Origin: Octopus sinensis
Taxonomy: Eukaryota
Direction of reading: 5' to 3'
Assembly: GCF_006345805.1 (NCBI RefSeq)
Contig: NC_043005.1
Span: 22,010,001-22,074,000 of the forward strand
DNA: 64,000 nt
Shown here: in pieces, positions 2,217 through 40,281 of the stretch
Layout: each line of letters opens with the position of its first letter
Position numbering within the stretch: position 1 is the first letter of the stretch
Program-made: the position numbers and the translations under genes
The notes under the pieces: model-generated
The model's input: the letters and a program-made list of their open reading frames with translations, nothing else
Database searches by the model: none
Told to the model about the DNA's origin: nothing

Positions 2217-2450
2217 CCAAAGATGATGTTTTGGTACTTAAAAGCACTTCCATACCAGGGCATGATAGTTTTGAACGAGTGGATAATGTGAGCTTAAAGG
2301 AGTGTGATCATGCTTGTCATCAAAATCCAGGATGTAACTCTTATGAGTATAATGAAAAACTTAAGTTGTGTGATCAAAGTAATGTGACTCACTTGACTCA
2401 GGACCTTCTACCCAACACATGGGAATGGAATACTTACATCATTAACCCAG
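2217..2450 (+). CDS. Exon B1: PAN/apple-like domain, type B (4 Cys)
   Basis: ttctag|CC acceptor, CCAG|gtcagt donor, 234 nt. KDDVLVLKSTSIPGHD...LKECDHACHQNPGCNSYEYNEKLKLCDQS...WNTYIINP shows the PAN core C-x3-C-x5-C-x-S-Y-x-Y...C. Confidence 0.9.
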
Positions 2451-3290
2451 GTCAGTAGAGTGTTTTTATTTTTTTGCTTTATGTGTTTGCATATCTATGT
2501 GTTTGAATGTATTTACATATACCTACATGTGTGTCTATAATGTGTGTGTGTGTGTGTATGTGCGCACACCCATGTTCACTGTAGGAGGGTATCTCCCTTG
2601 TTAGTACAGAAGCTGTGCTTTGTTTGTGGCTAAAGAGTCTTTGACTCTTGTTTCTAACAATGTTGGTGCATCCTTAGTCACTTTTAGTGATGGTTGAACT
2701 TTTCCCTTTTGGTTTTAATTTGCATCTAGCCACCTTAATCATTTATATATATATATATATATATATATATATATATATATTGAGAAGAAAAGTTATCAGA
2801 ATTTTGGAACAACTCCTTTTATTTCTTCATTATTATTAGCGCTTTTGTTCCTCTCTAGAACTTGTCAAATACAATTTTGTGAATGTACAAACAGCTTGTT
2901 CATTTATATTAAACAGATGTTTTTTAGGGATTTTGTTTAGAAGAGAACATTGTTTTTGTTTTTTTGGGTGAGGTTCTGAGACAAAGCACAGTGCCAGTGG
3001 AATGTGAAAAGCACATCCAAGTGTGATCATTGCCAGGACCATGGATTGACTCCCATGCTGATGGCACATAAAAAGCACCATTCAAACGTGATCGTTGTCA
3101 GTGCCACCTTACCAGCACATGTGCCAGTGGCACGTGAAAAACAACATTCGAGTGTGGTTGATACCAGCGCCGTTGGACTGGCTCTTGTGCAGATTTGATT
3201 CACTTTGTATCTTTTATTATATCATTGTCGTTATCTCTTTACTCTCATCCTCTTCCTAACATTGATATCAATTTATTTCATCAATTTCAG

Positions 3291-3461
3291 TTAACTCAAA
3301 AATCAACTGTGGACCACCAAAAGACATTGTTGGTGCTGAGAAGGACTACAAATCTACTGACTATAAATCTGAAGTGACCTATAGTTGCCCAGCGGATGAA
3401 ACAATTAAGTCTATATGTGAAAAGAACAACAAATGGACTCCAGTACCACCTATTTGTAAAG
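3291..3461 (+). CDS. Exon S1: compact Sushi/CCP domain
   Basis: tttcag|TT, AAAG|gtaaca, 171 nt. NSKINCGPPKDIVGAEKDYKSTDYKSEVTYSCPADETIKSICEKNNKWTPVPPICK has 4 Cys, CGPP, VTYxC and W-x5-C. Not recovered in this frame by the ORF track. Confidence 0.9.
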
Positions 3462-4557
3462 GTAACATAAATAGATTCTCTCTTGTATTTGTCTGTGATT
3501 TTTTTTTATTTTTGTACTAAATATCTTTGTCAGCAGAGGACTGGTGAACTCTGTGGCAATTTCTACAGTGATTGTGACTGGTGGAAGCTATCCTCAGACT
3601 AGAGACCTCCCTAAATGCTCATAACAGAGTGCATTCCATTAATTCTTCCCAAGGGCAAGGTAATGCGCTTTAATCAAGTGATGGATTAAGTATGCTGATC
3701 AAGAACTGGAAATTTGAATGATTGTTTCCTGTAGGCTTCCACATTGACCTTTCTCTCCAATACTCTTTGTCATCATCCAAAACTCTGTACAGTATAATGC
3801 TCTGAATGCTTCTTTACTAAAACTCTGAAACGGATTTCTGATGCTCTTGCTATCTTCCACTCCACCACCCTTAGTTATGATAATCCTAATAATAATGGTT
3901 TCTGATTTAGACACAAAACACAATTTTCAATAGATGTTTTGTCAATACCACAATCCCAACAATTTGAGTGGTATATTATTTTATCATTTCCCTGCAAGTG
4001 AAGTTGACCTCGGCTTGATTTCACCTAAAAAGCAAAACATTACAAAATTAATAAATTGATGGGTTATAGTTGTTGCTATAATTAATTATATTTAGTTACA
4101 TCCTTTTACATCATCGCTTCAAATCCCAACAATACGTACTTCACCTTCCATACATCTGAGATTGATAAAACAAGGTCTATTCAAGTATAGCAGTTGATTT
4201 ATTTTCAGATTTCATCACTGCAGAATTTGCGGTCTTGTATTTATGCTATAAACTTAATAATATCAGTCGCTTCAATAATTATGATTATTCTTGTTCTTAA
4301 GGGTGATGGATTGACAGAATCAACAGAGCATCAGACAAAATGTGTTGTGTTATTTGTTCTGGCTCTTTCACTTCTTAATTCAAATCCTGTAGATGTTAAC
4401 TTTGCCTTTCCAGGGCCACCAAAATAAAATATCACTCAAGGGTAGAGGTCAGTTTAATTGACAAACTTCTACCTCACAGATTTTAGCTTCTTTCTATATT
4501 AGAAATTATAATTGTTTTTGTTGTATTTCATTGGTTTAACTTTATCTTTATATCCAG

Positions 4558-4794
4558 ATACTAAGAATCAATTTGTAAAAGTAAAAGATGCCTCTCTTGA
4601 TGTACCGGAGAAAAAATTGTTGAGAAGTAACAAAATGACAGCAGAAACCTGTATAGTAAACTGTTTGCCTGATAAAAATTGTTTATCATTTGAAATAACA
4701 AAAAGTGGAAAATGTTACTTATCAAAGAAAACTGCAGCTACCTCCAAGAAATTAAAGGCAGCCCCAGACAGTGATTACTACCAACGAATACAAC
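4558..4794 (+). CDS. Exon A1: PAN/apple-like domain, type A
   Basis: tccag|AT, CAAC|gtaatt, 237 nt. TKNQFVKVKDASLD...TCIVNCLPDKNCLSFEITKSGKCYLSKKTAATSKKLKAAPDSDYYQRIQ. Confidence 0.9.
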
Positions 4795-38087: not shown

Positions 38088-38547
38088 GGATAAGGGGTGG
38101 AGAATGATCAATGATGCATGAGTTGAGGAAGCAGGAAAAATAGAAGATACTGGCTGTGCAGAAAAAGCAGTTGGGGGAGAGCACACCATTTTCGTTTGTT
38201 TTTCTAGCTGTCAAGACTTACACAGAATGTACTATTCTAAGAATATGAACTGCTTCAAAGATGGTAGATTTTGGGGTTATTCATATGTTCATCTTGATGG
38301 TCAACCAATGTCAGAATTACATTTTACCTTTTTTAGTTTTCGGTTTGTGTCTAACACTCTAATAATGATCGATACAACTTTCACTTTTTCCTGTTGGGAG
38401 TCTCACCTTAATATTTCTACTTATAATTCAGCATATTTTGAGAACCTTTCTATTGCTTTGGATGTACTGCTTTTTTTTTGTTTTTTATTGAAAGGAAGGG
38501 GTTTCTTTTTTGTTGTTTTTTTTATTAGAAAGAATTTCAATGTCTAT

Positions 38548-38771
38548 TGAATGGACCTGGGACCAAGGTCTCTACCATGATTTTTTAAAATGTGGTGGAA
38601 AACTACCTCATGAAGGCAGGGATGCTACTCCCTGGGACCCTTTCAGAGCCCCCATACCTATGGACTTTGCTATTTGTTCCATTCTAGAAAGTGATGTTTC
38701 AAGAGTTTCCTACAAAAATATTACTGTTCTGAAGAAAGCCTTCTGTCATATCATGGGATCATTTAAGTGAA
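38548..38771 (+). repeat. Near-identical direct duplicate of 37651-37876 (LINE 5' end / transposon junction)
   Basis: tgaatggacctgggacc...gatcatttaagtgaa occurs twice, about 225 bp, with only a few differences. Confidence 0.95.
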
Positions 38772-39008
38772 AATCAAAGAATTAAATCAAAATCGAAATC
38801 GATCAATATCAATGGAATTTGTAGTTTGTGGTACCAGTGCCGGTGGCACATAAGTGAACCATCCGAAGGTGGATGGTTCACTTATGTGCCACCGGCACTG
38901 GTACCACAAACTACAAATTCCATTGATATTGATCGATTTCGATTTTGATTTAATTCTTTGATTTTCACTTAAATGATCCCATGATATGACAGAAGGCTTT
39001 CTTCAGAA
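38727..39008. repeat. Perfect 138-bp inverted repeat with a 6-nt spacer (gaaggt)
   Basis: 38727-38864 is the exact reverse complement of 38871-39008, checked base by base. Confidence 0.97.
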
Positions 39009-40047
39009 GCACCCACTACACTCACGGAGTGGTTGGCATTAGGAAGGGCATCCAGCTGTAGAAACACCACCAGATCTGACTGGCCTGGTGCAGCCTTCGG
39101 GCTTCCCAGACCCCAGTTGAACTGTCCAACCCATGGAAAGCGGACGTTAAACGATGATGATGATGAGGAATTTTTTTCTAATTTCATATAATGGTTTCTT
39201 GTCTTCAAGGTTCAATTATTCTCTTTATCTGGATGTCAGTGCTCCTGGTACATAATTATACAATTCAACAAAAGTGTTATATGCACATTTTTTTATAAAT
39301 TGAAACAAAGCTTCTTATGCCATTCTTTGTATTCTTTCTGAGCTACCATTTTACAACCTTCTACAATGTGAACAATACATAGGTAGCATATATTTATTGA
39401 AGTGGTGCAATAAATATCCCTATTATTGAATTAGTATTTCGTATTTTATCTTCAATAGCTACCTTACCATTATTGATGTTATTGTTGTTATTTTATAGAT
39501 TTTTTTTTAATGTTAGAATTATTTAGAAAACCTATGTACTTGAAATTTTGAATAATAAGATACCAGAAAGTTATCTGGATCAGTTTATTTAAATGGTCAA
39601 TTTGTTTATAAAAACACAATTCAGCCACAAAATTACATTTTGGCCAAAGGTATCATGAGACAAACTCAAAACTTCACTTCAGTATTTAGATTGCAGATAA
39701 TCCATTTGTACACTCTTGTTTGATGGGTCACTTTTGTTTAAAATTGAATGACCATAACAACCCTTGGCATGTTTGTTGAATAGTGTTTAGACCCTACAAA
39801 GTACACCATCAGAAGACAGGTGTACAAATGGATTATCTGCAACCTAAATGTTGAGACAATATTTCAAGTATGTATTGAACTATACTGCAACTCACATGAA
39901 TTCTGACAAATGTTATTTTGTGGATCAATTGTTTGTTTATAATAAATTGTTCATTTAAAACAAACTATGCATCAGATGCTTTCTAATATTTGACTTATAT
40001 GTGCATGTATAAAACGTGATTTTTGTTTGTTTGTTTTTTTTTTCTAG

Positions 40048-40281
40048 CTCATCAAGACTTTATTGTCTTTAAAAAAGCTCGCATACCAAAACGTGATCAA
40101 TTCCAACGGGTTGACGATGTAACCATAAAGCAGTGTAAAAAATCTTGCAAGAAACATGCAGAATGTACTTCCTTTCAGTACAAAATGAATTCTAAAGTCT
40201 GTAGTTTGAGTAATGTGACTCACTTGACTCTTCAGATTAAACCTGACAAAAAAGGTTCGGATATTTACATTAGTAGCGCAG
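40048..40281 (+). CDS. Exon B5: PAN domain, type B
   Basis: ttctag|CT, GCAG|gtcagt, 234 nt. HQDFIVFKKARIPKRDQFQRVDDVTIKQCKKSCKKHAECTSFQYKMNSKVCSLSNVTHLT.... Confidence 0.9.

Follow-up and report, generated by a model that had tools for sequence, protein, structure and literature searches.

Positions 2217-40281 of a 64,000-nucleotide (nt) stretch of Octopus sinensis DNA (positions 22,010,001 to 22,074,000 of contig NC_043005.1, assembly GCF_006345805.1; the whole stretch is called the window below) form the repeat region of a single large octopus gene, whose product is predicted to be modular, with 4 1/3 units of PAN-B, Sushi and PAN-A domains followed by a GON domain. A preliminary description of this DNA had seen, in PAN-B copies that are hypervariable beside well-conserved introns, the signature of diversifying selection by an evolving ligand. 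We find instead that near-neutral evolution is a property of the whole protein rather than of PAN-B in particular; a positively selected class of sites is supported, but it is small, is present in all three repeated domain types and is weakest in PAN-B. The reading that we favor, and think probable, is a surface that evolves in a mostly near-neutral way on a conserved disulfide scaffold and is under limited diversifying selection, combined with repeats of unequal age and a constrained intron element. Expressed as ω, the ratio of nonsynonymous (dN) to synonymous (dS) divergence, this reading would place the scaffold of Cys, aromatic and Gly residues (about 25-45 % of sites, ω about 0.15-0.25) under purifying selection, would let half to two thirds of the domain sites drift at the neutral rate, and would assign an ω of about 3 to a small class (about 7 % of sites in PAN-B and 11-12 % in Sushi and PAN-A). 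The hypervariable look of PAN-B would then come mainly from a longer divergence, synonymous sites included.

A tblastn search of the window with its first PAN-like exon located five PAN-B exons of 234 nt each on the forward strand, and between them stand five Sushi and four PAN-A exons on the same strand. The 14 exons, one domain each, follow one another as B1 S1 A1 B2 S2 S3 A2 B3 S4 A3 B4 S5 A4 B5. When the orthologue was mapped onto the window, the gene was seen to continue past the repeats into four GON-domain exons that end with a stop codon at 60112-60114; the 3' limit of the gene is at least 60114, and its 5' end and N-terminus lie outside the window. The exons are the following (L001 is the orthologous O. 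bimaculoides locus):

2217-2450, forward strand: PAN-B exon B1, AG/GT boundaries and open frame; PAN_1 31.2 bits; orthologue at L001 6737-6970, 90 % nt identity
3291-3461, forward strand: Sushi exon S1; Pfam Sushi 19.9 bits; orthologue 95 % nt identity
4558-4794, forward strand: PAN-A exon A1; Pfam PAN_1 33.0 bits
6305-6538, forward strand: PAN-B exon B2; tblastn, boundaries and orthologue match
8013-8183, forward strand: Sushi exon S2; homology, boundaries and orthologue match
10127-10297, forward strand: Sushi exon S3, recently duplicated, with 85 % nt identity to S2
13074-13313, forward strand: PAN-A exon A2; homology, boundaries and orthologue match
18036-18269, forward strand: PAN-B exon B3; tblastn, boundaries and orthologue match
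21660-21830, forward strand: Sushi exon S4; homology, boundaries and orthologue match
24706-24945, forward strand: PAN-A exon A3; homology, boundaries and orthologue match
25078-25311, forward strand: PAN-B exon B4, of all copies the nearest to B1
28547-28723, forward strand: Sushi exon S5; homology, boundaries and orthologue match
30302-30541, forward strand: PAN-A exon A4; frame broken by one base near 30.35 kb
40048-40281, forward strand: PAN-B exon B5, the most divergent PAN-B copy
47217-47488, forward strand: GON-domain exon 1; orthologue mapping
51743-51919, forward strand: GON-domain exon 2; orthologue mapping
54619-54760, forward strand: GON-domain exon 3; orthologue mapping
60038-60114, forward strand: GON-domain exon 4, stop codon included; orthologue mapping

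All 12 of the repeat exons that were checked have AG/GT boundaries, a length divisible by three and phase 1-1, and B5 was read likewise. Since each domain occupies a symmetric phase 1-1 exon, the array grew by tandem exon or unit duplication, and it did so entirely before the split from O. bimaculoides, because every repeat exon that could be located in the orthologue pairs with it one to one. The domain assignments rest on profiles and on structure. B1 and A1 both score above the PAN_1 (PF00024) cut-off of 21.4 bits, and a three-domain stretch reaches 78 bits in the PAN profile match. A single Sushi exon falls just below the PF00084 cut-off (19.9 versus 20.7 bits) with profile positions 1-56 of 56 covered, C6, C32, C42, C55 and W48 are kept in 24 aligned copies (where those positions are covered), and PF00084 is already present in the precomputed annotation of the orthologue proteins. 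The joined GON exons give 116 bits (cut-off 22.6; PF08685, profile positions 1-191 of 199). An AlphaFold (AF2) model of B1, with a predicted local distance difference test score (pLDDT) of 81.5, shows the strand-strand-helix-strand-strand-strand order of the PAN/apple fold, and Foldseek aligned it with the PAN domains of plasminogen and HGF at template modelling (TM) scores of 0.73-0.81, the highest being with plasminogen.

The PAN-B copies are as dissimilar as first described, with 28 of 77 residues identical between B2 and B3 (36 %), 29 of 77 between B1 and B5 (38 %) and 51 of 77 between B1 and B4 (66 %); the spacing of Cys 29, 33, 39 and 51 is invariant in all five window copies and in all 19 copies of the family that were examined. 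Such figures invite the view that PAN-B is under strong and pervasive diversifying selection by an evolving ligand, so that its exons outpace neutral introns as in conotoxin and snake-toxin genes, a view that we consider quite unlikely. In its favor, PAN-B exons have 59-67 % nt identity versus about 80 % for those intron pieces that are still alignable (gaps excluded), and ω reaches or exceeds 1 in some B pairs (B1/B2 1.05, B2/B5 1.58). The 13 B1-to-B5 codon changes that had been listed as single first- or second-position changes with the third base kept are all real; however, the list omitted 15 single third-position changes, and codons with a single difference divide 16:9:15 among positions 1, 2 and 3. 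This split is approximately even, as expected if all codon positions change freely, and thus speaks against pervasive selection.

Positions 6044-6077 and 17778-17811 are indeed identical at 33 of 34 nt, but this match is the peak of one discrete intronic block of about 160 nt (below) and cannot stand for nearby introns in general: global alignments of fixed windows flanking the B exons were mostly at chance level (0.51-0.64, null 0.57), the B-flanking introns being mostly unalignable. The contrast with well-conserved introns is a hand-picked exception, not the rule, and the conserved block, as a special element, likewise counts against exons outpacing neutral introns. Introns are not slower between orthologues either. 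Comparison of the window with O. bimaculoides gave a Jukes-Cantor (JC) divergence K of 0.066 for introns (15.9 kb alignable) and of 0.0715 for the exons of the same pair, so that the pattern of fast exons and slow introns is absent here, with dS (0.085) at or above intron K.

Over the whole gene (1197 codons) the orthologues differ with dN 0.072, dS 0.085 and ω 0.84 (p = 0.30 for ω = 1). By domain ω is 0.69 in PAN-B, 0.74 in Sushi, 1.39 in PAN-A and 0.62 in GON, and none of these differs from 1; the PAN-A figure, the sole value above 1, is not significant, and neither the gene nor any domain has a dN/dS significantly above 1, as would mark accelerated evolution. Rates per codon are similar for PAN-B, Sushi and PAN-A, and ω in PAN-B is not above that of the Sushi and PAN-A domains, be it among orthologues or in the one-ratio model M0 (0.80; below). 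The preliminary description had named, as the outcome that would point to ordinary drift under relaxed constraint, a dN/dS well below 1 at all sites together with dS similar to or above intron divergence. The dS part is what we find, but dN/dS is not well below 1 (about 0.8 in M0, 0.84 between orthologues).

The changes that separate the orthologues are not spread evenly over the protein. With conserved columns defined from independent paralogues, replacements occur in 5.0 % of conserved columns versus 17.9 % of variable columns (Fisher p = 2e-8), and none of 56 Cys codon pairs has changed. At variable columns ω is 1.06, not different from 1. We also noted that orthologue dS is 0.036 at scaffold columns versus 0.095 at variable columns; the lower value could be due to codon or splicing-enhancer constraint, to mutation-rate heterogeneity or to chance.

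Codon site models were fitted with our own Goldman-Yang codon likelihood (F3x4 frequencies, pruning algorithm) to alignments of the window, the orthologous O. bimaculoides locus, one O. bimaculoides paralogue and one O. vulgaris paralogue. For PAN-B (19 sequences, M0 ω 0.80) the M2a-M1a likelihood-ratio test (LRT) statistic is 13.98 with all branch lengths optimized (p = 9e-4), and 7 % of sites fall at ω 2.7, 25 % at ω 0.16 and 68 % at ω 1. For Sushi (24 sequences, M0 ω 0.79) it is 32.8 with 11 % of sites at ω 3.4, and for PAN-A (18 sequences, M0 ω 0.79) 30.4 with 12 % at ω 3.5. The M8-M7 and M8-M8a tests are significant and agree with these; with M8 included, the statistics are 12-14 for PAN-B and 30-46 for Sushi and PAN-A. 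Over three topologies the M2a-M1a statistics range from 13.5 to 16.7 for PAN-B, 32.8 to 34.5 for Sushi and 30.4 to 45.8 for PAN-A (14.5-45.8 on the two alternative topologies), and 33 M1a null simulations recovered the input parameters with no LRT above 8.4. In PAN-B, exon codons 6 and 50 have the strongest support, and M8 adds codons 11, 15, 17, 25, 37 and 48; on the predicted B1 model they lie in strand 1, in the loops around the helix and in the turn between strands 3 and 4. The original claim of diversifying selection therefore survives as a small class of sites with ω above 1, and fails in so far as this class is neither specific to PAN-B nor strongest there and most sites are near-neutral. 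The significant tests do favor pervasive selection on PAN-B, but the selected class of PAN-B is the smallest of the three, and the large fraction of its sites that fit ω = 1 is at odds with such selection.

A separate observation concerns the recent duplicates S2 and S3, which differ with dN 0.19 and dS 0.12 (ω 1.7) over 56 codons, too few for significance; both copies are present in the orthologue.

The same models raise a second alternative, that constraint outside the disulfide scaffold is purely relaxed and that the class with ω above 1 is an artefact, whether of gene conversion among paralogues, of multi-nucleotide mutations, of saturation or of a misspecified model. We regard this as possible but doubtful. 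It agrees with the orthologue ω of 0.84 and the variable-column ω of 1.06, neither different from 1, with the fact that M1a already gives most of the fit (50-69 % of sites are at ω = 1), and with a mosaic homogenization along the repeat unit (below) that makes conversion plausible at this locus. Yet the Sushi and PAN-A statistics of 30-46 are far above the null maximum and stable over the three topologies, the one-to-one pairing of every exon with its orthologue means that there was no recent conversion, and close orthologues differ again and again at the same sites.

Why PAN-B looks more variable than its neighbors is best seen from the ages of the repeat segments. Median pairwise maximum-likelihood (ML) divergences within the window are dN 0.53 and dS 0.76 for PAN-B, 0.33 and 0.41 for Sushi, and 0.30 and 0.41 for PAN-A, with ω about 0.7-0.85 in each case. 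A model-free count gives the same picture, in that 28 % of same-residue codon pairs differ in PAN-B, 17 % in Sushi and 13 % in PAN-A. Since synonymous divergence is doubled in PAN-B too, which argues against pervasive selection, and since orthologue rates are similar across the classes, the divergence of the PAN-B copies has lasted about twice as long; this points to copies that are older or less homogenized rather than faster in protein evolution. The introns show a similar mosaic. Between different units, the alignable fraction is 8-20 % for introns from PAN-B to Sushi exons, 5-62 % for those from PAN-A to PAN-B and 27-71 % for those from Sushi to PAN-A, and the last, together with both flanking exons, make up an unbroken stretch of higher similarity (mismatch fraction 0.20 in aligned intron columns). 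The introns beside PAN-B exons are the least alignable, in keeping with the longer divergence of these copies. The Sushi-to-PAN-A segments were probably homogenized by gene conversion or duplicated later, in either case before the species split, and the PAN-B segments were not.

A conserved intronic block accounts for the striking match from which the contrast with introns was drawn. In the window it is found at three sites:

5975-6135, forward strand: conserved intronic block upstream of B2, containing 6044-6077
17709-17869, forward strand: conserved intronic block upstream of B3, containing 17778-17811
39804-39964, forward strand: conserved intronic block upstream of B5, recognized by sequence conservation

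The block lies 140-235 nt 5' of B2, B3 and B5, a subset of the PAN-B exons. Outside the window it occurs at L001 1-91, 10255-10415 and 14347-14507 and at L002 8077-8237 and 18956-19116; it precedes the orthologous exons, two B exons in a paralogous gene and the neighboring O. bimaculoides unit, and wherever it was found outside the window its core has at most five changes in 33 nt. Across orthologues and paralogous genes it is kept far better than the exons. To judge by this conservation it is a separately constrained intronic element, and we rejected it as a neutral intron yardstick, as it is a discrete element conserved in orthologues and paralogous genes. Candidate identities were also tried and set aside. 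It shows no conserved RNA fold, which speaks against an RNA gene (RNAalifold gave only -2.8 kcal/mol with one compensatory pair), and an Rfam search of the block had as its sole match SCARNA7, at 36 bits versus a gathering score of 65 and overlapping a GT microsatellite. Its consensus, read by eye, has stops in all three forward frames and so is not a coding exon, and a search of the window for a complementary docking site, as in a Dscam-like selector, gave one match with three mismatches, which is at chance level. The block may regulate splicing.

Introns of the window also hold young interspersed repeats that are 90-99 % identical, some inverted and resembling miniature inverted-repeat transposable elements (MITE-like), such as 20953-21221 versus 26162-26542 and 29715-30002 versus 40476-40656 versus 63198-63551; these could pass for conserved intron sequence shared by repeat units.

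These elements can be put together in a more speculative way, in which conversion keeps the Sushi-to-PAN-A segments alike, PAN-B copies are old and distinct specificity variants that go on gaining replacements at a few surface sites, the product is a multi-specific salivary binding array directed at changing prey or microbial ligands, and the intronic block is a splicing control that chooses among phase 1-1 PAN-B cassettes. We would put only slight trust in this reading.

Exon A4 bears on whether the gene is functional. At about 30345-30355 a short homopolymer differs by one base in length from the O. bimaculoides orthologue and from the paralogous exons, both of which are in frame; this breaks the frame of A4 and reflects either a fault of the assembly or a lesion that arose very recently. 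We analyzed the pieces on either side of it separately and left the sequence unrepaired. Together with an ω that does not differ from 1 and introns swollen by transposable elements, the break could suggest that the window copy is a decaying pseudogene, its high ω the result of lost function, but this is most improbable. No stop occurs in the 1197 codons, where 10.8 are expected under neutrality (none of 2000 neutral simulations was stop-free), no Cys has been lost, and substitutions avoid the scaffold columns. Apart from A4, the aligned exon pairs are equal in length, and AG/GT is kept in all 12 pairs checked; the exons 3' of the break are all open with every Cys kept, and a break within a short homopolymer is typical of assembly error. 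With stops absent and the scaffold constrained, we rejected the pseudogene reading. Skipping of A4, a phase 1-1 exon, would preserve the frame.

Several points weigh against the reading that we favor. The intron K of 0.066 comes from high-scoring segment pairs (HSPs) of at least 84 % identity only and is thereby biased low. At variable columns dN (0.101) exceeds it, which supports pervasive selection and could mean that the site models underestimate positive selection. The orthologue contrasts are clean in two species only, in which lineage-specific relaxation cannot be polarized. The models are our own implementation on neighbor-joining (NJ) trees, with branch lengths fixed from M0 except in the full PAN-B optimization; the trees of paralogues are long, at 7-12 substitutions per codon; and gene conversion inside exons can inflate the M2a and M8 statistics, as the models are recombination-free. 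The A4 break could mean a recent loss of function. Finally, the data show the anatomy of the gene, its orthology, its rates, the constraint on the scaffold and the LRT results, whereas we only infer that the product is secreted and binds a partner, that conversion gave rise to the age mosaic and what the selected sites bind.

A protein search with the joined exons returned octopod proteins only, none of them identical to the window product. The best match is O. bimaculoides LOC106869402 ("uncharacterized protein", P0002), with 86 % amino-acid identity and exons 90-96 % identical in nt, and it shares with the window gene the exon order and the C-terminal GON domain. Within the O. bimaculoides locus, one-to-one counterparts stand in the same order, 12 exons in one match and A1 and A4 in another. 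Several tandem paralogues come next at 37-55 % identity, and the PAN-Sushi-PAN unit is common to the paralogues and the window gene. The tandem paralogues of LOC106869402 in O. bimaculoides are LOC128248837/38/40 and LOC106869390; O. sinensis LOC118764741/42 and O. vulgaris "SVEP1-like" models are also among the closest known genes. The window gene is a different gene from O. sinensis LOC118764742 (52 % identity), and identity with the O. vulgaris P0003 locus was rejected on comparison. The LOC106869402 model starts inside A1, directly after a run of N (L001 about 9940-9982), and is without B1 and S1; L001 239-8631 holds the B1 and S1 orthologues plus a further B-S-A unit, outside the LOC106869402, P0004 and P0006 models. 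LOC106869402 as annotated is probably truncated at its 5' end.

In a full HMMER scan the PAN-Sushi-GON family was found in Octopus, Argonauta and cuttlefish, and Sushi-GON proteins more widely, in gastropods and amphioxus too. By sequence, then, the window gene belongs to a cephalopod GON-domain family that is tandemly expanded in Octopus. GON-Abd-1 of Abdopus aculeatus (UniProt R4G2C1), which we take to come from a posterior salivary gland transcriptome, has 49 % identity to the window gene (E = 7.7e-66).

The animal DNA of the window is rich in AT and contains microsatellites and transposable elements; the latter make the introns of the window gene about twice as long as those of its O. bimaculoides orthologue:

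34500-37650, reverse strand: retroelement resembling a long interspersed nuclear element (LINE-like), in the 9.5-kb intron from A4 to B5, with an Exo_endo_phos open reading frame (ORF) at 36859-37617 and an RVT_1 ORF at 35557-36027
50647-51375, forward strand: mariner/Tc1-type transposase remnant in the intron that separates GON exons 1 and 2 (Pfam Transposase_1, 89 bits)
8231-8734, reverse strand: intronic ORF remnant with a weak RVT_1 match (18.6 bits, below cut-off)
55868-56437, reverse strand: intronic ORF remnant with no family match above cut-off

The LINE-like element accounts for a strong skew toward C, a GC content of 44 % and the length of its intron. The mariner/Tc1 remnant is partly duplicated nearby, 50800-50936 being repeated at 51469-51604 with 95 % identity. 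The intron from A3 to B4 (24946-25077) is only 132 nt long, about 940 nt shorter than its O. bimaculoides counterpart; it is divisible by three, stop-free and inside an ORF (24651-25454), and its retention would preserve the frame.

This analysis documents an Octopus gene with an exon-per-domain PAN/Sushi array and a GON tail that evolves at a near-neutral rate and keeps its frame and disulfide scaffold. It carries a lesson of method: a contrast drawn from the best-matching intron block can stem from a constrained element and repeat segments of unequal age, and selection should be inferred from an exon-versus-intron contrast only after comparison with synonymous sites and with the introns of orthologues. 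For annotation, it is of use to know that the public orthologue model is cut short at an assembly gap. The gene may also be useful to those seeking candidate binding proteins in cephalopod saliva; Ruder and colleagues are said to have described, in J Mol Evol in 2013, coleoid GON-domain proteins from posterior salivary (venom) gland transcriptomes.

The nearest known system in domain content is GON-Abd-1, which has PAN-A, PAN-B, Sushi and GON types in common with the window gene, as well as the PAN-PAN-Sushi-GON architecture, as read from its sequence; it has, however, a single unit, as against more than four in the window gene, and a signal peptide. More distantly, the PAN domains share their fold with plasminogen and HGF N domains, the apple domains of factor XI and prekallikrein, apicomplexan MIC4, the Sarcocystis lectin SML-2 and leech saratin. 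All of these have a helix on a five-stranded sheet and two disulfides, as does the predicted model from the window, although sequence identity to known PAN/apple domains is only 12-28 % and, unlike in those proteins, the PAN domains of the window gene stand in a repeated array with Sushi and GON. PAN/apple domains generally serve as protein- or carbohydrate-binding modules. Toxin genes differ from the window gene in that its gene-wide ω is below 1 (0.8), its orthologous exons are not faster than introns, and its synonymous sites are as diverged as its replacement sites, so that dN is not greater than dS. Like the conotoxins, snake three-finger toxins, PLA2 and abalone lysin, however, the window gene keeps its Cys scaffold while surface residues turn over, has a class of sites with ω above 1, and belongs to a lineage-specific tandem family.

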